The notes beneath the pieces were generated by a model. The model saw only the letters and a list, made by a program, of their open reading frames with translations. It was not told the DNA's origin and ran no database searches. From sequence record NC_042018.1: 64,000 nucleotides of DNA; one strand, given 5' to 3'. Below are positions 14,929 through 63,158 of this stretch, piece by piece (position 1 is the stretch's first letter; every line of letters starts with the position of its first letter). The translations under genes and the position numbers were made by a program.

Positions 14929-15225
14929 GTTTTTATTTTAAAGCTATTATATTAACTTATACTTATTATCCTAGTCTATCGTCAGAGGGTTGACTAAATT
15001 AATAGTAATACGAAGTATTACATCCTTATAGGTAATAGCTCATAACAGCTATTACCGGTTGTCTTTACTTCCTTATTCTTTCCCTCCTCTCGTGAGAGAG
15101 TGAGGGGAGGTTATTATATTATAACAATTTTCGTCTCTACATTACTTAGGTGATCTGTGTAATAAACAAAACCTTTGTCAGACCGGCTTAGGTTATTTCT
15201 TTTTAAGGTTAAGAGGAAAGATACC
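14929..15225. other. AT-rich intergenic region with a cluster of hairpins
   Basis: Inverted repeats at 15005-15021 (GTAATAC-GAA-GTATTAC), 15031-15056 (GGTAATAGCT-CATAAC-AGCTATTACC) and 15082-15106 (terminator-like), plus a weaker one at 14972-14996. Confidence 0.6.
15135..15153 (+). promoter_or_regulatory. Putative phage promoter motif (CTAYATTAYTTAG class)
   Basis: CTCTACATTACTTAGGTGA. Related copies occur at 20704, 26210, 51975, 62483 and 63136, each upstream of a transcription unit. Confidence 0.5.
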
Positions 15226-15573
15226 ATGACGATTAGAAAATGGCTCTCAGTAGCGCTGATAGCGTTTATGACGATGTTTTGTATAAATGCGTCTGCTGAA
15301 CAAAACACTGCGCCTGTAGATGTCCGCTTTGGTCATCAAACCGATCCGATAAGCGGCATGCAATATACAGTCGCTTACGTCACTGCGGTTAGCGATGATG
15401 TCGTACTCACCGGCATTCGCGTTAACCGAGGTAACTGCCGAGAAAGCGTCGGCAATCCCGCTGTACCAGTGTCCATCTATTTTGGACAAACCGTCAAGTA
15501 CCTGTATATGAAGTGTAACCGCATCATAGAAGCCGAATTACGTACGAACCATGGCGACTGGGTATTTAAGTAA
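15226..15573 (+). CDS. Small secreted/periplasmic protein with signal peptide and a Cys pair
   Basis: ATG at 15226 follows gagg. MTIRKWLSVALIAFMTMFCINASA|E is a basic-hydrophobic-AxA signal peptide. The mature domain contains NRGNC...KC. Confidence 0.7.
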   Translation: MTIRKWLSVALIAFMTMFCINASAEQNTAPVDVRFGHQTDPISGMQYTVAYVTAVSDDVVLTGIRVNRGNCRESVGNPAVPVSIYFGQTVKYLYMKCNRIIEAELRTNHGDWVFK

Positions 15574-15595
15574 CACAATCAGTTAAGGAGACACA

Positions 15596-16114
15596 ATGGA
15601 GAACCAAGCGTTTTTAGACAAGTTCAATACTGTCGAAGATTTGCTGTCTACGGGTGATATGCTGCTTTACAAGTCTACGGACTGGGATTTAGCAGTAAAG
15701 ACCCTACACGCCGCTGTCGTTCAACGTGTGGCCGCAGAACCTGATTTTGAAGTATGGGTCCCGTTACGCTATTGGCAATACGCAAAAAGCAAAGACCGGG
15801 CCGCTGGGTTATACATTGAAGTGTTTGATGTGTACATCAGCAACAAGGGACGCGTTTATAACCTGAATGGTAACGACGGTAGTGAGCCGCATTTTGGTAC
15901 CGAAGATAGCAACGGGTATAAAACGTTCTCTGTAACGGTAGATGAGAAGTCGAAGAGTCTGATGGTGGAACGTGCGGTCGCCTGCTGTTTCCTACCGATA
16001 CCGGATGACTTAGCGACACACAAAATCATCGACCTGGAAGTGGGGCATCGTGATGAGGATCGTGCTAATAACGATGTCATGAACCTGTTCTGGAAATTAA
16101 CCAAAACCATGTAA
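15596..16114 (+). CDS. NUMOD4/HNH homing-endonuclease-like protein, apparently degenerate
   Basis: EVWVP...YISNKGRV...GY...VERAVACCF...VGHRDEDRANNDVMNLFW follows the I-HmuI-type pattern but stops 6 aa after NLFW. Confidence 0.7.
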   Translation: MENQAFLDKFNTVEDLLSTGDMLLYKSTDWDLAVKTLHAAVVQRVAAEPDFEVWVPLRYWQYAKSKDRAAGLYIEVFDVYISNKGRVYNLNGNDGSEPHFGTEDSNGYKTFSVTVDEKSKSLMVERAVACCFLPIPDDLATHKIIDLEVGHRDEDRANNDVMNLFWKLTKTM

Positions 16115-16120
16115 CCACTA

Positions 16121-16148
16121 CCCTACCTTCCCAATCGGGAAGGTAGGG
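16121..16148. terminator. Bidirectional terminator between convergent genes
   Basis: CCCTACCTTCCC-AATC-GGGAAGGTAGGG between the HNH gene (+) and the helicase (-). Confidence 0.75.
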
Positions 16149-16168
16149 ATTTCTCTTATGTTTATTTT

Positions 16169-17719
16169 TTATGCAGCTTCTCTGCTAAAATCATCCCAAT
16201 CCGGAATTGAATTGCCGTTTTCATCAAGTCGGTGTTTCAAGCTCTTACGGTACGCTGGCTTACCGTTTATGTCGTGCACCAATCCCTTCTCTGGATCCAA
16301 GTCGTAAATACCAAAGCGGTCTTTCGGATCACACCCTTCCCCACGCTGCTTCCCTATTGAGAATGTCCAATAGTTCTTCAAGTCCGTCTTCGCCACGTGT
16401 ATGGTGATTTCCACATCCACTTCGTTCGTTAACTTGGTTGAGGTTTCTGTCATGGACTTACCGGCCACTTCACGACCAAAGTACACTTCAGACTCATCAT
16501 CCGATTCACGCAGAATCTTCTTCGCTTCTGGACTCAACTGGTGAGGCGTCACGAAACAGATACCACGCGCCATGGTGAACGACCGCACCTTACGATAAAG
16601 CATCTGTAGCTTATCGCCTTTGGTGTCCCCGGTCATGCCTTCCAGTTCCATCATTGCCAGGTAGTCGTACGCCAGCAGAATGACTTCGTGACCTTTGAGT
16701 TCCAGCTTACGGATACGGTCACAGAACTTGTAGAAGTTATCTTTGTTGGGTTCAATCTGGTTGATGATTAAACACCAGCCGTTCTTCTTGAAGCCATTAA
16801 CGATGGTGTTAATGATTTCTTCGGCGGTACAGGTCATGAAGTCTTTCAACTCACCTGTCTCGGCCACACAGAACAGTTTAAACATACGAACAATGATGAG
16901 GTCGAGGCTATCCTCAGCAGAGTCCAATACCACCGTTGGGATTTTAGACTTATCACGCAACAGGGGTTTGTTGTACAGACCCACAGACGCTAACACATGA
17001 CCCAGGGTAAACGATTTACCACGGTTGGTCAGGGCGTTAAACAGATAGAACTTAGCACGACGTAAACCCCCGTCCGGTTCCAGTGCTTTGTTCAAGCCCT
17101 GCATACCTAACTTAAGGATACCGTCCAAACTGGCTTCGGACTTCGCCTGACTGATAACCGACTCAAAGCTTTTCGGATCATCAGAGGTGACTGTCCCCAC
17201 AACTTCGGTTTGTTTATCTTCGTTGAAGTTGTCGTTAATCTTTTCTTGAATCAGGTCCGACAGTTTAATCCAGTCTTCCTTCTTGAACTTCTTCACATCA
17301 CCAAAGTGAAACTCTTTGATGGTCTTCTTGAAGTTCTTGCTGAAACTGCTGTCGGTGGCATTACGACGAATTTCTTTGATGTGCTTATAGATAATCTGAC
17401 GGATACGTTCTTCGGACGCCACGTCTTCTAAGCCCAATTCAATCGATGTTTTCAATTCAGGTGCGTTGGCAGTGAAATCCATCACACGCTGCATTAACAT
17501 TGATTTTATGATTGGCTCATCATCGGGCTGTTCCAGAATCCAGTCTATCGTCGCACGGATATCTTCCTCGGTCTTTTTATCTTGTATAAAAACTTCTGAA
17601 CTGGAGATGGGTACGGTTTGTAAGAGATCCAACAGTTCATTTAACAGCGTCTTATCATTGATTCTTTTTACTTGGTAGATTGCTGTTAAGATTTTCACCA
17701 AGATGAGAAGATTACTCAT
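16169..17719 (-). CDS. dnaB: DnaB-like replicative helicase (phiKZ gp118-like)
   Basis: Walker A ALTNRGKS, Walker B LLAYDYL and the TPHQLS motif. It sits next to the capsid gene, as in phiKZ-like phages. Confidence 0.85.
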   Translation of the reverse strand: MSNLLILVKILTAIYQVKRINDKTLLNELLDLLQTVPISSSEVFIQDKKTEEDIRATIDWILEQPDDEPIIKSMLMQRVMDFTANAPELKTSIELGLEDVASEERIRQIIYKHIKEIRRNATDSSFSKNFKKTIKEFHFGDVKKFKKEDWIKLSDLIQEKINDNFNEDKQTEVVGTVTSDDPKSFESVISQAKSEASLDGILKLGMQGLNKALEPDGGLRRAKFYLFNALTNRGKSFTLGHVLASVGLYNKPLLRDKSKIPTVVLDSAEDSLDLIIVRMFKLFCVAETGELKDFMTCTAEEIINTIVNGFKKNGWCLIINQIEPNKDNFYKFCDRIRKLELKGHEVILLAYDYLAMMELEGMTGDTKGDKLQMLYRKVRSFTMARGICFVTPHQLSPEAKKILRESDDESEVYFGREVAGKSMTETSTKLTNEVDVEITIHVAKTDLKNYWTFSIGKQRGEGCDPKDRFGIYDLDPEKGLVHDINGKPAYRKSLKHRLDENGNSIPDWDDFSREAA

Positions 17720-17743
17720 TAGTTAACTCCAGGTGTAATAGAC

Positions 17744-20547: not shown

Positions 20548-20605
20548 TCCCTTCAACCAACTACGGTCGTCTGGGTTAAACTCAGGTTAGTACCGGTTGA
20601 AGGGA
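20548..20605 (+). other. Structured 3' UTR stem-loop after the capsid stop codon
   Basis: TCCCTTCAACC (20548-58) pairs with GGTTGAAGGGA (20595-605) and encloses CTGGGT-TAA-ACTCAG. Confidence 0.55.
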
Positions 20606-20629
20606 CTTCCCGCGTTTGATAAGTGATAT

Positions 20630-20672
20630 CCTCTACCCCCTCCCTTAACGGGGAGGTGGGTAGGGTTTATTA
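20630..20672 (+). terminator. Rho-independent terminator of the capsid transcript
   Basis: CCTCTACCCCCTCCC-TTAAC-GGGGAGGTGGGTAGGG-TTTATT. Confidence 0.7.
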
Positions 20673-20703
20673 CGCAACTTTACTTTCCACAATATATTTT
20701 TAA

Positions 20704-20720
20704 ACCTACATTATTAGAGA
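20704..20720 (+). promoter_or_regulatory. Putative phage promoter motif
   Basis: ACCTACATTATTAG is identical over 14 nt to 51975-51988. Confidence 0.55.
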
Positions 20721-20783
20721 GACTAACCCAATTATTGTTTAGCAATCAGTAGGCCACTGGTTGTTCTTTTGAGGTACCTCTCT

Positions 20784-21914
20784 ATGACATTAGATCATAA
20801 TGACCACACTAACCCTATTTTCAGTTGGGTGGTGGTAAACAAAACCAATGAAAGCTTGTCGGCAAAATCTCGGGGTGGGTTTGAATACATCATTCCGTCG
20901 ATTAACCGTGAGCGTGTAGTACACGATGGTGAAGTGAAGCTTATCGTGGAGTACAAGAATGTCTACATTGACCGGATAGCCTTCAACAAGTCTCAAGCAT
21001 GCACCAAGCTGGACAAAACGTTGATTGACTTACTGGAAGCTCGCCGTCAAGTCATGCTCAATAATGAGTACCTTAACCGCAGCATGGTACAAACCATCAG
21101 CGTTGGGGTTATCCTCAAGACGGACCATGTCGAAAACGACGACGGTGTACACAGTGACATCTTGGGTGTAAGCTTCTTCATGGACAACAACCTGTCTCGT
21201 CAAACCTCTGTGGGTATTCCGAAAGGCACCCCCACCTCCATCAACAACAAACTGATGTGGGAAGAGAATTACGAGGGTGTGTTGCCGGATGCATCTGAAT
21301 CAGTACGGGAACGCTGTATGACCGCAGAAACGCGTTTAACAGTGTTATATAACGACCCAACCAATATATTTAGTGGACTGTGGATGAACATACTGGGACA
21401 AGCCCGGTTAATCAATCGTACCCGTACCACAGACATCCAGCCAGGGCTGTATATCACCTACCGCTCTGGGTTAAGTAATAATGAACTGATTGAACGATAC
21501 TATAGTTTCGACCAGCTTAATGACAAAGCTTTGGAAGAAATGGGAATCTTTCTCAGCAAAGAAGAAGCACAGAAAGGGGGTAATACTGAACGGTATTTAC
21601 AAGCAGAAGCGACAATCAAATCGCTCAGTCAAAACATTGTTGGCTACCGTAAAGAAATCGCACAGCTTAATGATAAAAACAGCAATTTAACAAAAGACCT
21701 TAATAAAGAGGAAACCACCAACCTGAGATTAGCAGCTGAAATTGCTTTCCTGAAACAGGATTCTCGATTAAAGGACCGAGAACAGAAAATAGCGATAGAG
21801 ACTATCAAAGGAGCAAACAAGCCGAACAACACGGCGAGCTTTGTTGATATCTGTAAGGGAGTCGGCCTGTTAACCACAGCGGGGGTAACTGTTTATAAAG
21901 TATTCGCTACGTAA
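20784..21914 (+). CDS. Hypothetical protein with C-terminal coiled coil and hydrophobic tail
   Basis: ATG at 20784 follows gagg. A heptad-rich segment at aa ~280-340 is followed by VDICKGVGLLTTAGVTVYKVFAT. Confidence 0.65.
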   Translation: MTLDHNDHTNPIFSWVVVNKTNESLSAKSRGGFEYIIPSINRERVVHDGEVKLIVEYKNVYIDRIAFNKSQACTKLDKTLIDLLEARRQVMLNNEYLNRSMVQTISVGVILKTDHVENDDGVHSDILGVSFFMDNNLSRQTSVGIPKGTPTSINNKLMWEENYEGVLPDASESVRERCMTAETRLTVLYNDPTNIFSGLWMNILGQARLINRTRTTDIQPGLYITYRSGLSNNELIERYYSFDQLNDKALEEMGIFLSKEEAQKGGNTERYLQAEATIKSLSQNIVGYRKEIAQLNDKNSNLTKDLNKEETTNLRLAAEIAFLKQDSRLKDREQKIAIETIKGANKPNNTASFVDICKGVGLLTTAGVTVYKVFAT

Positions 21915-21932
21915 AAGTCGGAGATCCCATCG

Positions 21933-23588
21933 ATGGACCCAAAACTCTGGTCTCGTGTTGATACGAGCATGCCGCGATTTAATCCTGTAATCACGTCCGG
22001 GTTTCATCAGAAAGAGTGTGAGAATGGTGTGCACTTCTATGATTATTGCTTGCGTTTGATCTTTAAGAACATCGAACGTAAAGGGGTATTCTTTAAAGGG
22101 GTAACCCGTGTGCCACCAAAAGAGTTCGTGGAGTACCTGCAACGAACCAGTCACAAAGTCGCGGAAATTCATAAAGAGACACTGTATCCGGTGCGTCTCA
22201 ACTTTGAATATCGTGACAAAGCCGGTCGTATTGTTCCGCTGAACCCTGTGTACATGATGCTGCCTTATTGTGATATTTACGGGGATACATACCTGCGTAA
22301 CACACAGTACAGCTTCCAGGTGGTCTTAGCAGAACGCGGCCTGCCCGTTACTAAAGAAGAAGCTATCTTCGTGAAAGTGCTGGGTTTCAAATTCAAAATT
22401 GGAACTGAGTACTTCAAGTATGACCGCATCTTCAACGAAACGTCGAACAACATGGCAAGAACGCTGGACATCAACTTACCGTCCAACCGTTTCTACAGTC
22501 CGTCTGAAGCACGCAAGATCAAAGACAACAAAACTCCCATTCCTTTATTGGCATGGTACGTATTTGCTGAAATGGGCTTTTCCAAGGCCATGGAGCAGTA
22601 CGGTGAGTGTGAGTATGAGATCGGTGCACCAGAAGCCATTACGGATGAGTGTAAAGCTGATAGCCGCTGGGAAATTATTACGCGCAGTAGCAGTACTAAT
22701 ACCAAGCGTCTGGGCGAATTCATTCCGCATGACTTAGCCATCGGCGTTCGTAACAAGAATGAACGACGTAAAGAACTTTCCATTATGGGATTACAGTATG
22801 CCACCGCGCTGCTGTACGTCATTGACTGCTTGCCGTCGTATTTCGACATTGAGCGCATTGACGATCCTGATTATTGGAAGCTGATTATTGGCCGGTGTTC
22901 GGTAAAACCTGGAGACAGCAACGAGTACATCATGCGCTTGATGCATGAGCACTTTGACTCCATGGACGAATACCTCGACGAGGATTCCATTAAGAAGTTT
23001 GCTAGTCAGTCTATCGTGGTCTCTAACATGTTCGATTTGTTCAACTACATCATTGCTAACCGCAGTGAGATTGTTCAAACAACTGATAGAGCTTCAATGT
23101 TCCATAAGGAAATTGCGAGCCTGGAGTTCGTCCTTGATAAACTGATCACTGCAGCAAACCAATTCAGACACGACATCAAAAATAACTCCGAACTGAGCCT
23201 CAATAAGGTTAACCGCCTCCTGACATCCAACTTCCGTATTAAAGAGATCGACAACGCCCGTACAGCGAACTTGATCCAGGAAGCAACGCCGACCGACAAT
23301 CCATTTGTCGATTACATGTTGGGTTGTATGCCGCAACACAAGGTCTACACCAATGGCATGAAAGGGAAAGGTAATAAAGATTTTGATCCAAACGATTCAG
23401 CGACAATTACCCACGCATCACTCGCGTTTGTTAACAGCTTCCAACGTGTAACCAAACCCGGGCCGGATACGAGGGACTTCCTGAATCCGTGCGTGTTTTT
23501 GGTGAATGATCGCTTTACCGCTCTGAACCCTGAGCGCCGCGAGCTGTATGAAGCCACAGACAAGCGCCTTAAAAATAGAGAGAGTTAA
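21933..23588 (+). CDS. Non-virion RNA polymerase, split beta subunit N-terminal part (phiKZ gp123-like)
   Basis: 551 aa just downstream of the capsid gene, matching phiKZ/SPN3US synteny. It has MPRFN, YMMLPYC and FQVVLAERG segments recalled from this family. Confidence 0.7.
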   Translation: MDPKLWSRVDTSMPRFNPVITSGFHQKECENGVHFYDYCLRLIFKNIERKGVFFKGVTRVPPKEFVEYLQRTSHKVAEIHKETLYPVRLNFEYRDKAGRIVPLNPVYMMLPYCDIYGDTYLRNTQYSFQVVLAERGLPVTKEEAIFVKVLGFKFKIGTEYFKYDRIFNETSNNMARTLDINLPSNRFYSPSEARKIKDNKTPIPLLAWYVFAEMGFSKAMEQYGECEYEIGAPEAITDECKADSRWEIITRSSSTNTKRLGEFIPHDLAIGVRNKNERRKELSIMGLQYATALLYVIDCLPSYFDIERIDDPDYWKLIIGRCSVKPGDSNEYIMRLMHEHFDSMDEYLDEDSIKKFASQSIVVSNMFDLFNYIIANRSEIVQTTDRASMFHKEIASLEFVLDKLITAANQFRHDIKNNSELSLNKVNRLLTSNFRIKEIDNARTANLIQEATPTDNPFVDYMLGCMPQHKVYTNGMKGKGNKDFDPNDSATITHASLAFVNSFQRVTKPGPDTRDFLNPCVFLVNDRFTALNPERRELYEATDKRLKNRES

Positions 23589-23590
23589 TA

Positions 23591-26131
23591 ATGTCTTCTA
23601 TGATCACACCACGCAACGTCAGCGTACCCGGCGTGCAAGTTCCAGCCATGGATCCTAATGCCGGGGGACAGCGTATGTTGATGCCCGGTAGTCAGACCCA
23701 ACAACCTCAAGACCCTCTGTATGCGCTACGCAACATGTTCTCGAGTTCGTCGGGAGCTGGGGCGGTAACTGGTGTAGACTGGGGGCGTTATGACAGTCCG
23801 GGTTACGATGATCCCGCTCTCCGTGAAATCATCGCCAGCGGTAGCAGCATTGATGAGAACAGTACGCAGTATTACATCTCCCGTATAGCGCATGCGATGG
23901 GTGCATTCGTGCAGCAGGTTTCGATGCGCAACGGGCTGTTTTATCAGTGGTACATGCAAACCGTCGAAACGTTCAAGCTGGACGAGCAGGGCAACCGTTG
24001 TCCAATAGCTGAACAGTTCGTTGAGTTCTTCAAGAAGCGCCCAGAAATCACTGTAATCGTTGCTCGCAACGCCGCGGTTATGTTTGGGTACGAAGGTATC
24101 TCCCGCATGAAACAACGCAATGTCGATGCTCTGGATGCTCGTGAGTATGGTCAGTGTGTGGAAGTGGGGGTACGGTTTATCCTGTTCTTGGAAATGATCT
24201 CGTGGTTAACCAAAACGGCTCAGGGTCAGTCACTGGCTCAGAACCTACCACCTTCTTTCCGGGCCCGTGTTGATAAACTCGATCCGTATAAGGAGTTCGC
24301 GCAAACTGTTTTTATGCAGTTCAACTTGCCGTTCCCTTATGAAAACCTGATCTTCGAAGTTAAGACGCCGGTAGCATCAGGCTATCAGTTTGCTCAGGTT
24401 CCGGCCATGTATGAATCCGACTACGGGTTCACCACTGCTCCCGCTCCAGCGGCGCAAGTGCGTCAGATTAATGACGGGTACGGTAACAGCATTACCATGG
24501 AAGAAACGGCGCGTCTGCAGTCCCTGTGCTACAAACTGCATTTCCGTTCTCACCAGGAAGTCCTGAACTTCGAGAATCAAATCCAACGTCGTATCAACCC
24601 ACTGAACCCGCAAGACGTTCAGATGGCAATTGCGACCCGTAACCAACATTTATCTCAGGAGGACCAAGTAACGTCTCCGTACGCCTCTGCGCCTCAACGC
24701 GATGCATTTACCGACATGTATGCGATTCAGGACCTGCGCTCTGACTTTGCCAATATCACCGTTCAGAACCGTGATGCCTTTGACTGGCGAGCTCAGTTTG
24801 TCTTTACGGGACAACCTAATAAATACCTAATTAAGGATGAAGTTTGGCAACACATTAAGCGCGCGTTGCGCAAAGCTGACCCCAAAGAGATTGAAGAATC
24901 CATGTGGGGTGCGTACTGTTACCGAGTAGTTGTAGTCGATTTGCAGTATCCCGACAAAGATGGTTACCATTCGTATCTCGTCAGAGATAAGGCACGGAGG
25001 TTTACCCAGATGCAAACTTTCACCGACCCGGCGAAGTGCTTACCGGAACTTGAAGCAGATGACAACGGCAACGTTGTTGTAGCAAACACCGTCAAAGTAA
25101 ACGACATCATTCCGGAGAACGATCTGTCGTCGTTCATTATCCCGGCCAACGAAGTCAAAACCCTGGAAGGCACGGTACCGGTTATCGTGAACACCGATCC
25201 AGTGGCCAGTAATAATCACCACAGCATCAAGCAGACTATCGCAGCCATCAACGGCCGTCTGACCAATCCGCTTGAGCAACTCAACGCAACGTCTATGGAC
25301 GTCGCCGCGCTGGAAGAATTCCACTGCAGCAACGAATCCACCAAGGCCCGCCTGTTAGAGCTGTTGCCGTTCCTGTTTGACGACAACTACTTTGATCTGG
25401 TGGCGATGTCTTATGCAGAAGCTATCGAGTATATCGAGAAGACGCTGCGTTACGAAAACATCGAAGAAGAAGTTTCGCGCTTTATCCGTTTCAAGCTGAC
25501 CCAGGACTTCAACAACTTCCTGGTTAACGGCGTTGGGTTTAACCCGGTCCCGGGCGGAGAGAACCATCTCTCCAGTTCAGATATTCTTTCCGACATCCAT
25601 GAGGTGCTGGAACTGTTTGAGCGTAATGACAAATCGCTCTACGAGTATCTGACCAACAAGAAATACCGCTCGTCGCTGCTGCGCAAAATGTGCATGTTCA
25701 CAGTCGACGAAGTGGAGTACGAAGAAGTGGAAGTGATCGAAACCGATGAAGAGTCGGGCAAAGAAGTCAAAGTCATGAAGTCTATGCCGGTCAAACTTCC
25801 GCCGGTGGAACAGCTGAAGCTGGATACCACACTCAACGTGTGTAACCGCATTCACTTTACCACCATTAACCGTACGCCGAGCCCAATGTGGCAAGAGCAT
25901 GCAACGGTGACCATCAAGCGGTCGAACTTCCCGGAAATCTTTGCCATGGTAGAAGATGGCTTTAAGCAGACCTACGGAGACGACGCGGAGTTCCAGGAGC
26001 TGGATAAAGTTGTGCGCTTTGCTCACGACGACAACTACTGGTTGTTCACCACGTCGGTTTACGACAAGAACGTTGCACTGCTTCGCCACATGCCACAGGA
26101 CTCTGACCTGTTCATGCTGGAATTCAATTAA
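23591..26131 (+). CDS. Large conserved hypothetical protein
   Basis: 846-aa ORF coupled to the RNAP subunit gene. No recognisable catalytic motif. Confidence 0.65.
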   Translation: MSSMITPRNVSVPGVQVPAMDPNAGGQRMLMPGSQTQQPQDPLYALRNMFSSSSGAGAVTGVDWGRYDSPGYDDPALREIIASGSSIDENSTQYYISRIAHAMGAFVQQVSMRNGLFYQWYMQTVETFKLDEQGNRCPIAEQFVEFFKKRPEITVIVARNAAVMFGYEGISRMKQRNVDALDAREYGQCVEVGVRFILFLEMISWLTKTAQGQSLAQNLPPSFRARVDKLDPYKEFAQTVFMQFNLPFPYENLIFEVKTPVASGYQFAQVPAMYESDYGFTTAPAPAAQVRQINDGYGNSITMEETARLQSLCYKLHFRSHQEVLNFENQIQRRINPLNPQDVQMAIATRNQHLSQEDQVTSPYASAPQRDAFTDMYAIQDLRSDFANITVQNRDAFDWRAQFVFTGQPNKYLIKDEVWQHIKRALRKADPKEIEESMWGAYCYRVVVVDLQYPDKDGYHSYLVRDKARRFTQMQTFTDPAKCLPELEADDNGNVVVANTVKVNDIIPENDLSSFIIPANEVKTLEGTVPVIVNTDPVASNNHHSIKQTIAAINGRLTNPLEQLNATSMDVAALEEFHCSNESTKARLLELLPFLFDDNYFDLVAMSYAEAIEYIEKTLRYENIEEEVSRFIRFKLTQDFNNFLVNGVGFNPVPGGENHLSSSDILSDIHEVLELFERNDKSLYEYLTNKKYRSSLLRKMCMFTVDEVEYEEVEVIETDEESGKEVKVMKSMPVKLPPVEQLKLDTTLNVCNRIHFTTINRTPSPMWQEHATVTIKRSNFPEIFAMVEDGFKQTYGDDAEFQELDKVVRFAHDDNYWLFTTSVYDKNVALLRHMPQDSDLFMLEFN

Positions 26132-26142
26132 TTGAAAACCAT

Positions 26143-26190
26143 TACTCCTACCTCCTTAACGGGAGGTAGGAGTATATTACTTTATTTTTT
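26143..26190 (+). terminator. Rho-independent terminator
   Basis: TACTCCTACCTCC-TTAACG-GGAGGTAGGAGTA followed by a T tract. Confidence 0.8.
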
Positions 26191-26209
26191 AAGTTATAGT
26201 TCATTTCAA

Positions 26210-26232
26210 GTCTATATAACTTGGGTGAATAA
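26210..26232 (+). promoter_or_regulatory. Putative phage promoter
   Basis: GTCTATATAACTTGGGTGAATAA is identical at 20 of 23 positions to 63136-63158. TATATTAC, the phiKZ early-promoter core, is at 26173-26180. Confidence 0.6.
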
Positions 26233-26295
26233 ATGAATAAGAAATTCATTATTCTTAACCTAACATAACCACATTTAAATTAATGAGGAACTATC

Positions 26296-26667
26296 ATGAC
26301 TACTTCTAACAACAACAACTCTTACAACAACACTGCTGACCGTGACTTCATGAACAGCAACAATTCTGGCTATGCACGTATCGCTGGTTTCGGTGGCGTT
26401 GCTCTGGCAGCTGGCCTGGGCATCTATGGCGGTAAAGACGTGGCGAGCGTAGTGATTGGTGCTGGCGTTGGCGGTGCTTATGCTTACCTGGTAGGCGGCA
26501 TGGCTGATGGTATCGCACCATTTGCAGGTAAAGGCGGTCGCATCTGCCTGGCTACTTTAGTAGCTGCTGGCGGCTTCGCACTGACAGCTGACATGATTCG
26601 CATGTGCGAACAACTGACTACTGATGTAGCCGGTAACGAAGGCGTTGCTGCTGACCCGCTGTTCTAA
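26296..26667 (+). CDS. Small Gly/Ala-rich membrane protein with Asn-rich N-terminus
   Basis: MTTSNNNNSYNN followed by 2-3 hydrophobic GxxxG-rich segments. RBS gagga. It forms a standalone unit with its own promoter and terminator. Confidence 0.7.
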   Translation: MTTSNNNNSYNNTADRDFMNSNNSGYARIAGFGGVALAAGLGIYGGKDVASVVIGAGVGGAYAYLVGGMADGIAPFAGKGGRICLATLVAAGGFALTADMIRMCEQLTTDVAGNEGVAADPLF

Positions 26668-26673: not shown

Positions 26674-26703
26674 ACTCCTGCTACCCTCATGGGTAGCAGG
26701 AGT
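26674..26703. terminator. Bidirectional terminator
   Basis: ACTCCTGCTACCC-TCAT-GGGTAGCAGGAGT between convergent genes. Confidence 0.75.
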
Positions 26704-35865: not shown

Positions 35866-35868
35866 AAG

Positions 35869-49500: not shown

Positions 49501-51960
49501 ATGATACTGAAACTCATCCTGGAAAACTACGTTCCATTAGCAACAAGCGGCATTAACAAAATCGAGCTTGACGTAAACCACATCGTCAACTTGTTAATCA
49601 GTGTCAACGGCTCCGGTAAAACCAGTATTCTCAAAGAGATGAATCCACTGCCTCCGGACAACGCCAACTACAAAACAGGCGGCCGTAAATACATCTCGAT
49701 AATGCACAACCAAAAACACTTTGTGCTGGATTCATATACCCACAAAGGTAACGGTCACAGCTTCAAGGTTGATAACAAAGAGATGAACGAAGGCGGCACG
49801 CTCACCGTTCAAAAGAACCTGGTGTTACAGTTCTTTAATCTCGACAACAACCTGAACAAAGTGTTGAGTGGGTTAAAAGTACCTGACCAACTCAGTGCCA
49901 TGTCAACGTTACGTCGTAAAGAAGTCTTTATGCGTATCTATCCCAACAACACGGACTATGCGGTTGGGGTGTACAACAAGTTAAAGGATGAACGCAACAG
50001 CTTAAAGGGTGCGATTAAGAATCAGGTTACCCGCTACGCCGAAGAGAACCGGAAACTGGAAACCCTGAGCGGGATGACCATCGGGGAACTCGAAGACCAG
50101 GTCAAGTACATCGAAGAAGAGCTCAAGCATGCGCTGCTGTTACGTGGTCAGTTAGAGAACGCTGAGATGGACCCGGAGATGCGTAGCAAGTATGACCAGT
50201 TCAGTCGCCTGGTTGATAGCTTAACGTTGAACGTGGCGAAAGCCACCTCCATGAGTCACGAAGAGCTGTTACGTGAAGCGGCTCGGTTAGAGAACATGTT
50301 GGACTTTAACCTCAAGCACGCTGAGAAGTACACCACGCTGATTAACGAGTATACCAAGAACTTGTCAGGGTTAAGTTTAGAAGAGCAAGACCCGAAGAAG
50401 TTCAAGGATCAGCTCGAAATCATCAGTGATGAATTGGTGCGGTTGAATGAGTCAGTTATTCAACACGGTGAGACGCTGAAAGCTTTCCCTATCTTTAATG
50501 ACGGGGAAATGTACGAAGAGTTGACGGTGATTGCCGAAGACTTTACCAGCTACCTACACCGTATCACGTTAGCCAGCTCGCCCGAGTTAACCAGCGGTCA
50601 GTATAAGCAGTGGTTAGCAGAAATCGAACAGATGAGTAACACCATTCGGTTACGTAAACAAGAACGTCAGCAGATTGCGCATCAGTTAAAGCACATGCAG
50701 CAGGCCGATGTGATTGAGTGCCCGGAGTGTACGCATAAGTTCAAACAAGGTATTACCCCGCAGGATATTGTTCGTGTAGAGCAGGGATTGATAGCCGCCG
50801 ATAAGTTCATCGAATCTCAGGAAGCCAAGTTAGTGAGTTTGCAAAAGCAGATTGACAACGACGCCGACTGGTATTACAGCATGAACCAACTCGCTAGCTT
50901 TGTGCGGGAAAACCAGCACGTTCGTGTACTGTCTACGTTGATGCGTGAATACAACCTGGGTAAAGATCCAACCGAACGGTTGATTAACGGCCTCAGGATG
51001 CATTGTAATCGCGTTAAACTTATCAAACGTAGAAACGCCTTGATGGAAGAGGAGAGCGTCTTAAAAGGGCGCATACAAATCCTCGAAAACAATAATATGA
51101 GTCAGGCGCTGGAACAAATCCGGTGGGCCGAAGGGCAATTAGCTGACTTTAATCAGGGTATTCTGTTATACAGAGGGAAGTTGAAGGACGTTAATCGCGA
51201 ACTTGAACTGATTCGTCGCCACGAAATTGATTTGGAAACGCTGCTGTTCTTACGGGAAGAACTCTACTCAGGTTTTGTTAACCGAGCACGGGCTGAACTC
51301 CGTAACACAGTAGACAACATCATTACCACGCTGGGTCCACGTAAAGACCGTCACCTGGCCGACATTATTCGCACACGTTCTTTGAGTTCTGTTGTGGCTT
51401 CTATTGATGAAGATATTCAACGCTTAAAGAAACGATTAGTTATCGTTGAAACAGCCATGGATGGGTTGTGTCCGAATAAAGGGTTAATTGGTAAACTGAT
51501 GTCCGATTTCATTCAGGCCGTCTGTGGTAACATGAACGCCATCATCAAAGACGTTTGGAACGAACGCCTGCTTATTAAACCTTGCACGAAGGAGAATGGA
51601 GATTTAACGTATAAGTTCCCGGTGATAAACGGTGAAGATTCGGTTAACTCGGACATTGTTGATTGTTCGGCTGGCGAAAGTGAAATCATTAACTTTGCTT
51701 TCCGCTACGTCATGTTGCAATATCACGCTGACTATCCAATGTTCATGGATGAAGTCGGGGTATACTTCGACGAAATTAACCGCGGCCGTTTCTTTAACTT
51801 CATCAAGAACTATGCGTTGAGTGGCGACTGCACACAGATGTTTATGATCTCCCACTACGTTAACCAGTACGGCATATTCAAAGACGCAAACATCATTGCG
51901 CTGAAGTACGACGGGTTGACGATTAATGGGGAAGTGAACAAGCATTCTGTCATACACTAA
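49501..51960 (+). CDS. sbcC: SbcC/Rad50-like SMC ATPase
   Basis: Walker A SVNGSGKT, a long coiled coil with central CPEC zinc hook, ABC signature CSAGE, Walker B FMDE and switch ISH. Confidence 0.88.
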   Translation: MILKLILENYVPLATSGINKIELDVNHIVNLLISVNGSGKTSILKEMNPLPPDNANYKTGGRKYISIMHNQKHFVLDSYTHKGNGHSFKVDNKEMNEGGTLTVQKNLVLQFFNLDNNLNKVLSGLKVPDQLSAMSTLRRKEVFMRIYPNNTDYAVGVYNKLKDERNSLKGAIKNQVTRYAEENRKLETLSGMTIGELEDQVKYIEEELKHALLLRGQLENAEMDPEMRSKYDQFSRLVDSLTLNVAKATSMSHEELLREAARLENMLDFNLKHAEKYTTLINEYTKNLSGLSLEEQDPKKFKDQLEIISDELVRLNESVIQHGETLKAFPIFNDGEMYEELTVIAEDFTSYLHRITLASSPELTSGQYKQWLAEIEQMSNTIRLRKQERQQIAHQLKHMQQADVIECPECTHKFKQGITPQDIVRVEQGLIAADKFIESQEAKLVSLQKQIDNDADWYYSMNQLASFVRENQHVRVLSTLMREYNLGKDPTERLINGLRMHCNRVKLIKRRNALMEEESVLKGRIQILENNNMSQALEQIRWAEGQLADFNQGILLYRGKLKDVNRELELIRRHEIDLETLLFLREELYSGFVNRARAELRNTVDNIITTLGPRKDRHLADIIRTRSLSSVVASIDEDIQRLKKRLVIVETAMDGLCPNKGLIGKLMSDFIQAVCGNMNAIIKDVWNERLLIKPCTKENGDLTYKFPVINGEDSVNSDIVDCSAGESEIINFAFRYVMLQYHADYPMFMDEVGVYFDEINRGRFFNFIKNYALSGDCTQMFMISHYVNQYGIFKDANIIALKYDGLTINGEVNKHSVIH

Positions 51961-51974
51961 CAATAGTTTTTCAG

Positions 51975-51992
51975 ACCTACATTATTAGGCTG
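51975..51992 (+). promoter_or_regulatory. Putative phage promoter motif
   Basis: ACCTACATTATTAGGCTG; 14 nt identical to 20704-20717. Confidence 0.55.
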
Positions 51993-52065
51993 ATAGAGGC
52001 AAGATTTAAGTGCAATATCCGAAGCAGTCTTGCCTCTAAAAACAAAATAGAGGAAACACCGTATC

Positions 52066-52764
52066 ATGTTCAAGTCAATTCTTATCACTTTAGGGGTCGT
52101 TTTCAGCTTGATGGGCGCGCCAGCACTGGCTAGCACAAGCACGGCACACCCAGCCGAAATTAAAGGGTTCAATAAACTCAAGGACTACATATTCGAGGCA
52201 GAACAAAAAACGGGGACGTCAGCCGAGTTGCTTACGGCCTTGTTAAGTGTCGAATCCACCATGGGACACAATACTGTTAACCGTCACAGCAGTGCGCGTG
52301 GGGTGATGCAGTATACCAGTAAAACCTGGCGGGCGGATTTAAAGAAGTACCATAAACAGTTGGGGTTATCAGCCAATGCCTCTGTCACTAATCCACGTGC
52401 CGCTATTCTGGTCACGGCAGCAGCATTAGCCGATAATAAAGTTTACCTACAACGTAAAACAGGCAGAACCATCTCTAACGGTGATTTATACATGACCCAT
52501 TTTGTTGGCCTAGGCGGTGCGGAGAAAATCCTACGAGGAGAATCTACCACTCGCGTGTCCAAACTGGTTACTGTACACAGTAAGAATGGAAAGCGTTACC
52601 ACGTCAAAGGTAAGGTTGCCACGGTCGCTCAATTCCGGGCAAAGATGAATACCTTAATTAAGAACGAGACACGTAAATACGCCGTGGCTCTGGATCAAAG
52701 TCGAATGGATAACTTGATGACTGCTTTGAGTAACAACAAATCTTACGCAGTGGCTTCACTGTAA
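52066..52764 (+). CDS. Lytic transglycosylase (SLT family) with N-terminal signal peptide; candidate endolysin
   Basis: MFKSILITLGVVFSLMGAPALA| signal peptide, catalytic LSVES, SSARGVMQY, and LYMTHFVGLGGA. Confidence 0.8.
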   Translation: MFKSILITLGVVFSLMGAPALASTSTAHPAEIKGFNKLKDYIFEAEQKTGTSAELLTALLSVESTMGHNTVNRHSSARGVMQYTSKTWRADLKKYHKQLGLSANASVTNPRAAILVTAAALADNKVYLQRKTGRTISNGDLYMTHFVGLGGAEKILRGESTTRVSKLVTVHSKNGKRYHVKGKVATVAQFRAKMNTLIKNETRKYAVALDQSRMDNLMTALSNNKSYAVASL

Positions 52765-52882
52765 TTTGTTACCACGCGGTTTCATAGTTATGAGGATAAT
52801 GTACTTGAAATAACTAACTGTAGTAGACGATAAAATCAGGGGTCGATTCTACATGAGTTGTTCTAGTCGAATGAGGTTAATT

Positions 52883-53140
52883 ATGACTAAGCAAATTGTT
52901 AAAGCAACTGTAGTGGATGACGTTCTGGTTCCCAACCCCAATGGTGAAACTGAAGTCATCGTAGATATTGAACAAAACGCCGGTGATTGCAAGACTGCTA
53001 CCCTGTCTTTCTGGGGTAACATCCAAGGGGTCGTCAGCTATGACGAAACCGGTGAACGTGTGGTTAGCCATATGGCACTGGGAATGGGCGACACTGCGAA
53101 TATTGCATCGTCCATTGAAAACATTGCCAATGTAATTTAA
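52883..53140 (+). CDS. Hypothetical protein
   Basis: ATG at 52883 after gagg; 85 aa. Confidence 0.6.
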   Translation: MTKQIVKATVVDDVLVPNPNGETEVIVDIEQNAGDCKTATLSFWGNIQGVVSYDETGERVVSHMALGMGDTANIASSIENIANVI

Positions 53141-53147
53141 TCACGTC

Positions 53148-53183
53148 AGGTACTCTCTAGGGCTTGTCCCTAGAGAGTAACCT
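53148..53183 (+). terminator. Rho-independent terminator
   Basis: TACTCTCTAGGG-CTTGT-CCCTAGAGAGTA followed by TTTATT. Confidence 0.75.
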
Positions 53184-60217: not shown

Positions 60218-60220
60218 TCT

Positions 60221-60570: not shown

Positions 60571-60579
60571 GGACACGTC

Positions 60580-61041: not shown

Positions 61042-61050
61042 GGGTGCCGT

Positions 61051-61395: not shown

Positions 61396-61402
61396 GGACA
61401 AC

Positions 61403-61981
61403 ATGAAAGTATCCATGATTCTGGCTATGGACCGCAACTGTTTAATCGGGAAAGGCGACCAACTTCCCTGGCGTCACCCGGAAGACCTGTTGTGGTTCAA
61501 ACAGCAAACCATCGACAAACCGATTCTCATGGGACGTACGACCTATGAAGGATTAGGGCGTCCATTACCAAACCGCCCCAACATCGTGCTGAGTCGTGCT
61601 GACACTAACTTAGTGGGTGATGTAGCACGGGTGCAGTCGTATGAAGACGCACACTACCTGGCTAAGCAGTTGGGTTATGATGAGCTGATGATTATCGGCG
61701 GCAAGCAGGTGTATGAGTCACTGATTGACCATGCTGACTGTATCTACGTCACGGTCATCGATCACGACTACAACGGTGACGTCCATATGACCCATCCGTT
61801 GTTCGAAGCATTGGCTGGTCGGGACCTCTCTGAGAAGAACCCGGCCTTTACCAATCTCGGCTTTGATCGGTTGTTTACTCGCGACGGTGACGTGAGACAT
61901 GTGTGGGATGTCGAGGTGTTGAACCGTGTCCTTAGCAATGATGTTATGCTCAATTTTGTGAAGCTAACACGTTGCCATTAA
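61403..61981 (+). CDS. folA: Dihydrofolate reductase
   Basis: ATG at 61403 after gagga. ILAMDRNCLIGKGDQLPWRHPEDLLWFK, MGRTTYE, RPLPNRPNIVLS, IIGGKQVY. Confidence 0.95.
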   Translation: MKVSMILAMDRNCLIGKGDQLPWRHPEDLLWFKQQTIDKPILMGRTTYEGLGRPLPNRPNIVLSRADTNLVGDVARVQSYEDAHYLAKQLGYDELMIIGGKQVYESLIDHADCIYVTVIDHDYNGDVHMTHPLFEALAGRDLSEKNPAFTNLGFDRLFTRDGDVRHVWDVEVLNRVLSNDVMLNFVKLTRCH

Positions 61982-61990
61982 GGAAAGGAT

Positions 61991-62425
61991 ATGGGTCTGG
62001 GTTACATCGACGTTAAGCTCGATTCCAAGCAAGAAGATGACTTGATTCGGGACTTAACAACTTTAGGGATTAAAGCTCTACCAAAAGGGAAGTACCACTG
62101 TACTGTCATTTATGACAAACGTGAGGAACTTGATAAGCCGCTGTGCGACATCGACCCTGAGCAAGTCTTTGAAGCACACGTCGTGGAGGTTAAACCACTC
62201 GGAGATGCCCTGGTCTTTACTATGACGTCTAAAGATATCTATGATGAATTTAGACGATTGCAGGAAGCCGGATATCAGCACAGTTTCCCTGAGCTGTTGG
62301 TTCACATGTCAATTTGCTACGACTTCAGTGCGTACGACAAGTTGAAGGTGGAACAGTTCATGGGCCGATGGATAGGCCGCAACATTCAGTTCTCTCGCGA
62401 ATCGTTACAACCCGTTAAGTATTGA
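61991..62425 (+). CDS. acb1: 2H phosphodiesterase, Acb1 (T4 57B)-like anti-CBASS candidate
   Basis: 144 aa with two HxT/S motifs: H36-C-T-V-I-Y and G.QH.F....H105-M-S-I-C-Y-D. The C-terminal RESLQP matches the T4 57B pattern (HSTICY; GATHDF..Y.PHITLSYN; REYKEP). Confidence 0.72.
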   Translation: MGLGYIDVKLDSKQEDDLIRDLTTLGIKALPKGKYHCTVIYDKREELDKPLCDIDPEQVFEAHVVEVKPLGDALVFTMTSKDIYDEFRRLQEAGYQHSFPELLVHMSICYDFSAYDKLKVEQFMGRWIGRNIQFSRESLQPVKY

Positions 62426-62429
62426 TGCT

Positions 62430-62462
62430 CCCCTGCCCTCGTCCTACGGGACGGGGGTGGGG
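62430..62462 (+). terminator. Rho-independent terminator (UNCG loop)
   Basis: CCCCTGCCCTCGTCC-TACG-GGACGGGGGTGGGG. Confidence 0.7.
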
Positions 62463-62482
62463 TTAATCTATAAGAAATTTCA

Positions 62483-62500
62483 TCTCTAAATTATTATCGT
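62483..62500 (+). promoter_or_regulatory. Putative phage promoter motif (degenerate copy)
   Basis: TCTCTAAATTATTATCGT lies directly after a terminator and about 50 nt before the next ATG. Confidence 0.35.
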
Positions 62501-62548
62501 GTATGTAGACCACCTATATACACTTATCCAATCAAGAGGACACAAGTA

Positions 62549-63118
62549 ATGAAAAAGAAAGCGACACATAAATTCTTCCCTAACGGTAAACAAGTGGGTG
62601 AAGCCGTTTCTGCGTGTTTAAACAACATGGTGTGGGTTGCCGGGAGTCACGGTGTATTACCGCCGAACATGAATGTCACTGTGCCGTTCATGCTTACCGC
62701 CACTGACCGCATGATGGTGAAGAACTCCGTGTGCAATATCTTGATCGACAATGAAGCCAGCTGGCAGTTAATTCTGGTGGCCGCTTTCGACAATGCCAAA
62801 TCCCGCTCTTACGTAACGGCGGATATCCATTTGAATCAATGGACCTTGGCTGAAGTTGGGCAGAAGATTATGGAAATCTGTGAAGTCACGGTTCGCAAGA
62901 TGGAAGAAGTGTTCTGTGGTGAAGGCGCAGTTAACCTAAACGATATTCACCACTACGGTTACATGCTGTCGCCTACGCAGGGTCTGAACACTGACGTAAT
63001 CGAAGAGCGGTTAATCGATGCCTTACAAACGGGTAGCTTCGATCACTACGACTGGCAGTCCCGTCCGGTTATTACTCCCAAAGACTTTATTGACTCTATC
63101 GCGGCTGTGAAGATTTAA
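62549..63118 (+). CDS. Hypothetical protein
   Basis: 189 aa with RBS gagga. Confidence 0.65.
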   Translation: MKKKATHKFFPNGKQVGEAVSACLNNMVWVAGSHGVLPPNMNVTVPFMLTATDRMMVKNSVCNILIDNEASWQLILVAAFDNAKSRSYVTADIHLNQWTLAEVGQKIMEICEVTVRKMEEVFCGEGAVNLNDIHHYGYMLSPTQGLNTDVIEERLIDALQTGSFDHYDWQSRPVITPKDFIDSIAAVKI

Positions 63119-63135
63119 GATATAGAAATGTTCAC

Positions 63136-63158
63136 GTCTATATAGTTAGGGTGAATAA
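63136..63158 (+). promoter_or_regulatory. Putative phage promoter
   Basis: GTCTATATAGTTAGGGTGAATAA is identical at 20 of 23 positions to 26210-26232. Both are followed by TTATTCTTA. Confidence 0.6.

Follow-up and report, generated by a model that had tools for sequence, protein, structure and literature searches.

Predicted early promoters of the phiKZ type in the Erwinia jumbo phage RisingSun

Six sites and the genes behind them

The window analysed is a stretch of 64,000 nucleotides, bases 62001-126000 of the genome of the Erwinia jumbo phage vB_EamM_RisingSun (NC_042018.1). It contains six copies of a promoter-like element, which are listed here with the hairpins and genes around them (window coordinates; promoter scores in bits are from the weight matrix described below).

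15083..15110, + strand: terminator hairpin at the end of the upstream late structural operon (gp78), an 11-pair stem then TTATTATATT; -23.6 kcal/mol
15115..15156, + strand: predicted early promoter P(gp79), core CTACATTAC from 15137; 31.7 bits
15226..16114, + strand: cassette gp79 + gp80 (annotation), closing terminator at 16121-16148
20630..20665, + strand: terminator hairpin after the major head protein gene gp83, tail TTTATTAC; -26.8 kcal/mol
20684..20725, + strand: predicted early promoter P(gp84-gp85-gp86), core from 20706; 36.2 bits
20784..26131, + strand: predicted core early operon gp84-gp85-gp86 (homology; PHROG matches)
26143..26174, + strand: terminator hairpin after gp86, a 14-pair stem with tail TATTACTT; -25.4 kcal/mol
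26190..26231, + strand: predicted early promoter P(gp87), core from 26212; 41.9 bits
26296..26667, + strand: single-gene cassette gp87, with a strong hairpin after it at 26674-26703
51955..51996, + strand: predicted early promoter P(gp104-gp105), core from 51977; 38.3 bits
52066..53179, + strand: cassette gp104 + gp105 (Pfam SLT), terminator at 53151-53179
62430..62462, + strand: terminator hairpin after gp120, tail TTAATCTA; -27.6 kcal/mol
62464..62505, + strand: predicted early promoter P(gp121), core CTAAATTAT from 62486; 39.6 bits
62549..63118, + strand: gp121, 189 aa, of unknown function and without a hydrophobic segment
63116..63157, + strand: predicted early promoter P(gp122), core from 63138; 40.9 bits
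63220..64000, continuing beyond the window end, + strand: gp122, 344 aa

An earlier note on this DNA had described six such elements, and all were present, with the C of the CTA core (15137, 20706, 26212, 51977, 62486 and 63138) 2-3 nt further on than it had put them. The 14-nt identical run common to the copies at 20704 and 51975 was recovered, as were, by direct reading, the 20 of 23 positions shared by those at 26210 and 63136. A genome-wide matrix scan showed that these six are all the copies in the window, none having been overlooked. Strong G+C hairpins (-23.6 to -27.6 kcal/mol) do stand 23-40 nt upstream of four of them (15137, 20706, 26212 and 62486); when all six sites were examined, no such strong hairpin was seen close upstream of 51977 or 63138.

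P(gp79) lies 26 nt past the terminator hairpin, and its predicted start, G 15152, would give a leader of 74 nt up to the ATG at 15226. The gp79 protein (115 aa) has a Sec-type signal peptide, judged from hydropathy and the N-terminus, with an ASA end before EQ. No homologue of it was found in phage EL, and its sole match is a PHROG family of unknown function. The second gene of the cassette, gp80, is annotated as an HNH endonuclease.

P(gp84-gp85-gp86) has its predicted start at G 20721. The gp84 protein combines a coiled-coil region with a C-terminal tail that is weakly hydrophobic. A GAGG ribosome site serves the ATG at 20784, while RefSeq takes the TTG at 20769. The gene at 21933, gp85, was found by tblastn to align with phiKZ 122215-123789 (PHIKZ123), bearing out its identification as a non-virion polymerase beta-like subunit, and gp86 encodes 846 aa of unknown function. 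In a relative about 98% identical, known from sequencing runs, the differences listed include 20630, 20647 and 20687, the next being 20819. In the terminator region after gp86 (26143..26174) a hairpin is called on the - strand too.

P(gp87), with its predicted start at G 26227, belongs to a near-identical sub-family of four promoters with P(gp122), P(gp32) and P(gp149). The gp87 protein (123 aa), for which EL has no homologue, has an Asn-rich N-terminus and two hydrophobic Gly/Ala-rich segments. P(gp104-gp105) has no terminator upstream and its distal part overlaps the gp103 stop codon; from its predicted start, G 51992, runs a 74-nt leader containing a stable hairpin (-19.4 kcal/mol, z = -4.1). 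The predicted start of P(gp121) is G 62501, giving a 48-nt leader that opens with a hairpin (z = -4.0), and P(gp122), which begins at the gp121 stop codon, has its predicted start at G 63153. By eye, the C-terminal part of gp122 resembles gp87 in its Asn-rich stretch, Gly/Ala-rich hydrophobic segments and PLF end, but this is low-complexity sequence and BLAST did not find the two to be paralogues.

A family of 27 sites and its anatomy

The weight matrix was seeded with the six window sites only and then iterated over the RisingSun genome. Before iteration it already retrieved about 20 extra sites outside the window. After iteration it gave 27 sites scoring at least 27.6 bits, the next-best site in the genome scoring 13.2 bits; in 20 first-order Markov genomes a mean of 0.2 sites exceeded 14 bits. 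All 27 are on the + strand. An IUPAC pattern search of the genome gave 20 forward and 0 reverse matches, and a reversed control pattern gave none in either direction. An unseeded ranking of 7-mers in intergenic DNA placed CTACATT and TACATTA next after words from terminator stems. In Joad all 20 pattern matches are retained, and the only two changes fall at positions where the family varies between C and T, in one case the Y of CTAYATT.

Every site has the same orientation as the gene downstream and stands 36-118 nt before its start codon, which has a ribosome site. The earlier note had considered an equal frequency of the motif in coding regions, and this is not what was found: the cores are intergenic at 25 of the 27 sites, intergenic DNA making up 5.6% of the genome (binomial P ~1e-29), and none of the 27 lies deep within a gene. 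The sites at genome 29616 and 128086, which have the lowest scores, fall inside the last 30-55 nt of the upstream genes and may be weak or inactive; in phage AR9 one consensus-like site proved silent (PMC5312081). The matrix scan found no copy in the large structural-gene blocks at genome 37-77, 89-113 and 166-187 kb.

The consensus of the 27 sites is TTTTCA - 3 nt - CTAYATTAYTA - 3 nt - GTGAAT, with most of the information held in the AT-rich core CTAYATTAYTA at every site. In phiKZ and phiR1-37 transcription is reported to start 6 nt after the core, and the AR9 promoter has the form ATATTAT-(6N)-G (PMC5312081). The RisingSun start was placed 6 nt beyond the core following these three phages, and transcription is thus predicted to begin at an invariant G (27 of 27 sites), 15 nt past the C of CTA and the second G of GTGAAT, which spans the start. 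Numbered from this G as +1, the core occupies -15 to -5, the T-tract TTTTCA -24 to -19 and a weak distal element, TAA..TA.AG, about -37 to -28. The position of the T-tract agrees with the 'T-rich motif upstream of -19' described for phiKZ (PMC8244752). The predicted leaders have a median length of 48 nt. RNA-library data for RisingSun consist of assembled contigs, which may be DNA carry-over; they run across promoters and terminators and are therefore uninformative on transcript starts.

Related phages and the polymerase that would read the sites

Applied to EL, the RisingSun matrix gave 21 sites; in phiKZ it gave 33 once iterated, among them the TATATTAC sites of that phage. In both genomes every site is on the + strand. 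Published counts of phiKZ early promoters are 28 and 32 (PMC8244752, PMC13282480). The motif matches the published early-promoter consensus of EL, WTTTYAAACCTACATTATY, and of phiKZ, TATATTAC (PMC7058600). Early promoters of phiKZ are transcript-mapped, whereas those of EL, OBP, N1M2 and RisingSun are predicted.

Blocks and spacing are equal in RisingSun and phiKZ (T-tract, 3-4 nt, (C/T)TATATTAC, 5-6 nt, TG), and in both there are about 30 sites per genome on a single strand, often directly behind conserved terminator hairpins whose tail is of the TTAT type. Placement is shared as well. A site precedes the nuclear-shell gene, gp54 in phiKZ, in all three phages (RisingSun 21779, EL 26014, phiKZ 45567), and another precedes the gp123-type polymerase operon, the post-capsid gp121-gp123 operon of phiKZ (RisingSun genome 82706, EL 90610, phiKZ 120656), adjoining the 3' side of the capsid gene in RisingSun and phiKZ. 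RisingSun differs from phiKZ in favouring CTAYATTAYTA, with C and T alternating at two positions, in its T-tract (TTTTCA against TTTRAGAT) and in a stronger GTGAAT near the predicted start.

EL is the nearest characterised relative, its shell protein being 48% identical. Six or seven of its 21 sites precede orthologues of RisingSun early first genes, including those of PhuZ, gp39, gp224 and gp237, even though protein identities are only 26-54%. EL has a fixed AAAC between T-tract and core, where RisingSun is degenerate. The accessory cassettes also differ, since 16 of the 27 RisingSun first genes are without an EL homologue. In more distant genera, OBP and N1M2 share TTTCA, the ATATTAT core and GTG with RisingSun, but have GATATTATC where it has CTAYATTAY. 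For the Klebsiella phage N1M2, 31 early promoters have been predicted (TBYAWWWWWTTTCARRYAKATATTATYWAAGTGWA), and its authors place polymerase subunit and lytic transglycosylase genes behind them (PMC7058600). The AR9 early promoter, AAATATATATTAT-(6N)-G(+1), resembles that of RisingSun in its ATATTAT-type core, 6-nt spacing and G start, and is read by a multisubunit virion polymerase (PMC5312081). Unlike RisingSun, AR9 has a uracil-containing genome and no phage nucleus, and upstream of the core it has a longer AT run in place of a distinct T-tract.

The phiKZ homologues of the polymerase genes were placed by tblastn, and the roles of the phiKZ subunits are described in PMC8287921. The proteins gp29, gp43, gp44 and gp85 are homologues of the phiKZ non-virion subunits gp55, gp71-73, gp74 and gp123, and all four of these beta/beta' genes lie downstream of a same-strand site, the sites standing upstream of gp28-gp29, gp43-gp44 and gp84-gp85. 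A hairpin stands between gp28 and gp29. The genes gp220, gp229 and gp230 match phiKZ regions said to encode gp149, gp180 and gp178 and so are putative virion polymerase subunits; no member of the 27-site set lies upstream of them, and the available part of the published RisingSun mass-spectrometry text does not list them.

Since a polymerase cannot make itself, the enzyme that reads the sites must already be there at injection, and it is most likely the injected virion RNA polymerase, as the motif, its orthologous placement and the pattern of polymerase genes all suggest. The consensus, the matching placements, the non-virion genes behind sites and the lack of sites before the putative virion polymerase genes together indicate that the six sites are very probably six of 27 phiKZ-type early promoters of RisingSun, a nucleus-forming jumbo phage.

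It seems improbable that the sites are instead later-class promoters or operators at which the non-virion polymerase or a phage-made regulator acts. Early timing is deduced, and some phiKZ genes, that of the shell among them, have both early and middle promoters (PMC8244752). However, the non-virion polymerase genes themselves stand behind sites, and that polymerase therefore cannot be the first to read them; the motif is missing from the structural-gene blocks and differs from both later motifs of phiKZ, the middle one, in which an A-rich run is followed by TACT at about -22, and the late one, which has TATG at the start (PMC7598289, PMC8244752).

Recognition by the sigma-70 RNA polymerase of the host, the usual case among phages, with TATATT of the core as the -10 box, is very unlikely. 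TAYATT agrees with TATAAT at up to five of six positions and the DNA upstream is AT-rich, but it lacks an acceptable -35 hexamer at 16-18 nt, and a scan for the TTGACA and TATAAT consensus at that spacing picks out none of the six sites. Sigma-70-like matches in the window are in no excess over shuffles (11 against 14.4 and 12 against 15.0). The best-conserved positions (the C of CTA, TTAY, TG at -1/+1 and the T-tract at -24 to -19) have no counterpart in sigma-70 promoters, and the homologous phiKZ motif works independently of host polymerase and protein synthesis (PMC7598289, PMC13282480).

A non-promoter repeat (a homing-endonuclease target, a recombination or replication signal, or an N4-like hairpin element) might be suggested by the site before the HNH cassette of gp80 and by the mobile look of several cassettes, in view of the 16 first genes that EL lacks, but this is scarcely credible given the uniform orientation and distance to start codons, the conserved placement ahead of core genes in both EL and phiKZ, and the absence of site-specific inverted repeats flanking the core in RisingSun, EL and phiKZ when matched and mismatched flanks were compared (arm pairs in RisingSun 4.00 matched against 3.97 mismatched, permutation p = 0.46).

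If the sites are early promoters of the phiKZ type, a multisubunit virion RNA polymerase would enter with the injected DNA and initiate at the 27 sites without host polymerase or new protein synthesis. The first transcripts would be those for the nuclear-shell protein, PhuZ tubulin, the four beta/beta' pieces of the non-virion polymerase and GroEL, together with many small lineage-specific single-gene cassettes. The strong hairpin terminators just before many promoters would insulate these early units from late-operon read-through. Such signals have been described before in phages of the phiKZ type, to which RisingSun adds another example.

Envelope genes and the transglycosylase cassette

The earlier note had read the elements as early virion-polymerase promoters, a view that stands as argued above, and their genes as a regulon enriched in envelope-targeted proteins, a view that does not. 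In the window, four of the six first genes encode a signal peptide or hydrophobic segments. Over the whole genome the figures are 7/26 against 35/213 for first genes (p = 0.18) and 10/52 against 32/187 for predicted early transcription units (p = 0.69), and pooling RisingSun, EL and phiKZ gives an odds ratio of 1.36 (p = 0.31). The excess in the window is a small-sample effect; the regulon is headed by genes for the nuclear-shell protein, PhuZ tubulin, polymerase subunits and GroEL, those of PhuZ and GroEL also lying behind motif sites in RisingSun. The proposed superinfection exclusion found no support, a neighbouring gene labelled 'Cor' having matched nothing in Pfam at E <= 0.01.

Early action on the envelope is possible for the transglycosylase gene, gp104, as distinct from a genome-wide enrichment, because its cassette recurs in five other jumbo phages. 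The gp104 protein (232 aa) has a signal peptide, with an ALA end before ST, and an SLT lytic transglycosylase domain (Pfam SLT, E = 1.5e-8). It has full-length homologues in many jumbo phages; those in N1M2, Miami, AH04, pEt-SU and AhC3_1 have an early-type promoter core in front of them, so that a signal-peptide transglycosylase stands behind an early-type promoter in six of the eight phages checked, RisingSun included. In the cassette the promoter is followed by the signal-peptide SLT enzyme, then the small protein and lastly the terminator. The small protein of RisingSun, gp105 (95 aa), is homologous to the product of the small gene after the Miami transglycosylase, the comparison having been made with Miami only.

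It may tentatively be suggested, at rather less than even chances, that nucleus-forming jumbo phages express a Sec-exported transglycosylase and a conserved partner of 85-95 aa from an early virion-polymerase promoter. If so, these phages would work on the cell wall of the host from its periplasmic side within the first minutes of infection, and the purpose might be to allow bulging of the cell around the phage nucleus, to block later phages or to pre-load a lysis enzyme.

The motif family

The window is 100% identical to bases 62001-126000 (+ strand) of Erwinia phage vB_EamM_RisingSun (NC_042018.1 / MF459646.1, 235,108 bp), a phiKZ-related jumbo phage that encodes a nuclear-shell protein, a PhuZ tubulin and, in several split genes, RNA polymerase beta/beta'. 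The six promoter-like elements described in an earlier note were confirmed at the positions given there. The CTA common to them has its C at 15137, 20706, 26212, 51977, 62486 and 63138. The note's counts of shared nucleotides (a 14-nt identical run and 20/23) were correct, as was its observation that four of the six sites follow strong hairpins (-23.6 to -27.6 kcal/mol).

A weight matrix made from these six sites only recovered about 20 further copies elsewhere in the genome. The iterated matrix gave 27 sites, all on the + strand and scoring 27.6-49.4 bits, with nothing from 27.6 down to 13.2 bits; simulated genomes contained 0.2 sites above 14 bits. Independently, an IUPAC pattern search returned 20 hits on the forward strand and no reverse-strand hit; the reversed pattern, used as a control, gave no hit at all. 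Exactly six sites of the family are in the window and the earlier note had overlooked none. Intergenic DNA makes up 5.6% of the genome but contains 25 of the 27 cores (P ~1e-29), the remaining two being inside the last 30-55 nt of the upstream gene. When 7-mers in intergenic DNA were counted without any seed, the core words ranked directly below those of the terminator stems, which were the most over-represented of all.

The consensus is TTTTCA, 3 nt, CTAYATTAYTA, approximately 3 nt and GTGAAT, with a weaker TAA..TA.AG farther upstream. Each site is 36-118 nt upstream of a start codon that has a ribosome-binding site. In the closely related phage Joad (99% identical overall) all 20 pattern hits are retained with only two changes. 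Both are at positions that are C/T-variable in the family, and one affects the Y of CTAYATT.

Early promoters of other jumbo phages and the probable reading polymerase

The sequence upstream of the shell gene is visibly the same in RisingSun, EL and phiKZ. The RisingSun matrix found 21 sites in EL and, once iterated, 33 in phiKZ. All of them are on the + strand, and in either phage the scores were clearly two-peaked, as in RisingSun. The phiKZ figure agrees with the 28 (PMC8244752) and 32 (PMC13282480) early promoters in the literature. Published early-promoter consensus sequences are WTTTYAAACCTACATTATY for EL and TATATTAC for phiKZ, with longer versions for OBP, 201phi2-1 and N1M2 in the same table (PMC7058600). 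Judged by its sequence, the RisingSun motif plainly belongs to this series. According to reviews, such a motif can be found computationally in every polymerase-encoding jumbo phage and, wherever transcripts have been mapped, it is the early promoter (PMC7598289).

Gene context is shared too. In EL a site lies no more than 130 nt upstream of the orthologues (26-54% protein identity) of PhuZ, the shell protein, gp39, gp84, gp224 and gp237. In phiKZ, sites precede phiKZ gp54, the phiKZ gp71 region and phiKZ gp121-gp122-gp123 directly behind the capsid gene, the last being the arrangement seen around the window promoter of gp84. A tblastn search aimed, for example, at the fifth polymerase subunit (phiKZ gp68) gave no phiKZ homologues of gp39, gp40, gp41, gp84 or gp86 (E <= 1), a result that is weakly informative at such evolutionary distance.

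Using tblastn and published subunit lists (PMC8287921), gp29, gp43, gp44 and gp85 were matched to phiKZ gp55, gp71-73, gp74 and gp123 of the non-virion polymerase, and gp220, gp229 and gp230 to the phiKZ regions for the virion enzyme, the multisubunit polymerase that is injected. All the non-virion subunit genes have a motif site upstream on the same strand, gp29 being parted from gp28 by a hairpin, whereas none of the predicted virion subunit genes has one. This placement implies that the sites would need a reader that is already there when synthesis of phage proteins begins. A sigma-70 scan flagged none of the six window sites, and host-type promoters were not in excess. From the subunit-gene placement, the sigma-70 scan and the phiKZ precedent we infer that the injected virion polymerase is very probably the best candidate reader; the earlier note's reading of the sites as early promoters is well supported by homology.

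Contigs from RNA libraries, derived from a relative approximately 98% identical, run unbroken over the capsid gene, terminator, promoter and operon. They were rejected as evidence for start sites because they cross terminators and promoters alike and may be DNA. The relative was seen in four metatranscriptome runs of one study, labelled 'food fermentation metagenome', and in several unlabelled runs (window 20600-26500). The food-fermentation matches indicate that relatives of RisingSun exist beyond fire-blight samples.

Predicted starts, terminators and gene annotation

For phiKZ and phiR1-37, transcription is reported to begin 6 nt past the conserved core, and AR9 early promoters have the form ATATTAT-(6N)-G(+1) (PMC5312081). 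Start points in RisingSun were predicted by this 6-nt rule. At the predicted +1 each of the 27 sites has a G, and this position carries the most information in the matrix; the predicted leaders are 21-103 nt long (median 48).

Predicted transcription starts (+1) in the window
15152, + strand
20721, + strand
26227, + strand
51992, + strand
62501, + strand
63153, + strand

Four promoters, those of gp87, gp122, gp32 and gp149, form a near-identical sub-family, GTCTATATAGTTARGGTGAATAA. A hairpin can be folded from +1 in the leaders of gp87, gp122 and gp32, and a weaker one in that of gp149. By eye, the protein gp87 looks like the C-terminal region of gp122 (an Asn-rich stretch, Gly/Ala-rich segments and a PLF end), which suggests duplication of the cassette, the promoter-gene-terminator unit.

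Regions of the promoter sub-family
window 26190-26300
window 63116-63225
genome 26564-26670
genome 142664-142762

Three other candidate elements were discarded: a second leader motif, ATTTAA, which reflected only the general AT-richness upstream of genes; an N4-like hairpin promoter, rejected after a test for pairing between the core flanks; and a possible late-promoter word, TATAATAG, ahead of gp27 in RisingSun and EL, which had only 6 copies and inconsistent placement.

The terminator hairpins are themselves a sequence family, in the window and genome-wide, with a 5' arm rich in pyrimidines (e.g. TACTCCTACC), a loop of 4 nt, a 3' arm rich in purines and, in place of a long T run, a TTAT/TATT tail. 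The family is similar to the conserved terminator motif of phiKZ (PMC10914365).

Terminators of the family in the window
15083-15110
16121-16148
20630-20665
26143-26174
53151-53179
62430-62462

An AT-rich element of approximately 45 nt with a perfect TATAAT, ATAAGTTAATATAATAG ... AAAATAAAAACTT, occurs twice, one copy being antisense into the end of gp78 and the other 80 nt ahead of gp163.

Copies of the AT-rich element
window 14930-14975, - strand
genome 149785-149830, + strand

The RefSeq starts of gp14 (genome 12337) and gp32 (26604) are GTG codons that belong to the promoter itself (GGTGAAT) and coincide with the predicted start of transcription; ATG 12379 for gp14 and ATG 26649 or 26667 for gp32 are likelier. 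A 33-aa ORF, gp9 (genome 9028-9129), spans a promoter. In gp84, a GAGG ribosome site goes with the ATG at window 20784, not with the annotated TTG at 20769.

Content and meaning of the predicted early regulon

The conserved core of the regulon comprises the shell protein, PhuZ, the second polymerase, gp39-41, GroEL, gp224 and gp237. The shell protein gp28 and polymerase subunit gp29 have one common early promoter, and the hairpin between their genes (-19.3 kcal/mol, genome 23880-23915) could set a high ratio of shell to polymerase transcript. Sixteen first genes (those directly behind a site) are lineage-specific, mostly in single-gene cassettes. Of the six cassettes in the window, only gp84-86 has an EL homologue; the other five are lineage-specific units of promoter, gene and terminator, similar to the single-gene units in the phiKZ literature.

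The earlier note had also proposed a regulon enriched in envelope-targeted proteins. Signal peptides or hydrophobic segments do occur in four of the six window first genes: the signal peptide of gp79 is classical, gp87 has two Gly/Ala-rich segments, gp104 combines a signal peptide with a Pfam SLT domain, and gp122 has a gp87-like C-terminal part. Enrichment was assessed by hydrophobicity (Kyte-Doolittle, 19-residue window, threshold 1.6), a crude measure that also flags GroEL, for first genes, predicted transcription units, EL and phiKZ. No significant excess was found for first genes genome-wide (7/26 vs 35/213, p = 0.18), for their N-terminal hydrophobic segments (3/26 vs 10/213, p = 0.16), for predicted early units (10/52 vs 32/187, p = 0.69) or for RisingSun, EL and phiKZ pooled (odds ratio 1.36, p = 0.31). 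The recognisable members, namely the shell protein, PhuZ, polymerase, GroEL and a phosphohydrolase, are cytoplasmic. RisingSun gp123 (genome 126344-126745, just past the window end), named 'Cor superinfection exclusion protein' in RefSeq, had no Pfam match (E <= 0.01). A -17 kcal/mol hairpin parts gp122 from gp123.

Regulon-wide enrichment was therefore not supported, but one part of the envelope proposal, the cassette of the transglycosylase gp104, recurs in other phages.

Transglycosylase cassette
window 52066-53179: gp104-gp105, conserved in several jumbo phages

Many jumbo phages have full-length homologues of gp104, and a Sec-type signal peptide is present in each of the eight gp104-type enzymes inspected. 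Of seven other phages, five (N1M2, Miami, AH04, pEt-SU and AhC3_1) have an early-type promoter core 60-90 nt ahead of the homologue, and two (KpLz-2_45 and SPLA10) lack it there; the N1M2 authors name the transglycosylase gene as one of those that follow their predicted promoter (PMC7058600). The partner of approximately 90 aa, gp105, was compared only with the small gene behind the Miami enzyme, to which it is homologous (29% identity, E = 4e-7). A cassette terminator is annotated only in Miami and RisingSun. The gp104 leader contains a stable hairpin (-19.4 kcal/mol, z = -4.1). The cassette may provide an early wall-remodelling function, or a lysis enzyme made early.

The motif search in the RisingSun genome paper reported only another motif, within structural genes, and the early-promoter motif of RisingSun and Joad was found neither there nor elsewhere by full-text literature search. 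The kind of signal is already known, RisingSun and Joad being newly added cases, and the map leaves existing knowledge of how nucleus-forming jumbo phages work unchanged. It is the first early-regulon map for RisingSun and the near-identical Joad, giving 27 promoters with predicted starts and correcting several gene starts. The lineage-specific first genes are natural places to search for host-takeover and anti-defence functions, and the conserved promoter plan, which phiKZ, EL and an enterobacterial phage have in common, aids the prediction of early genes in newly sequenced nucleus-forming phages.
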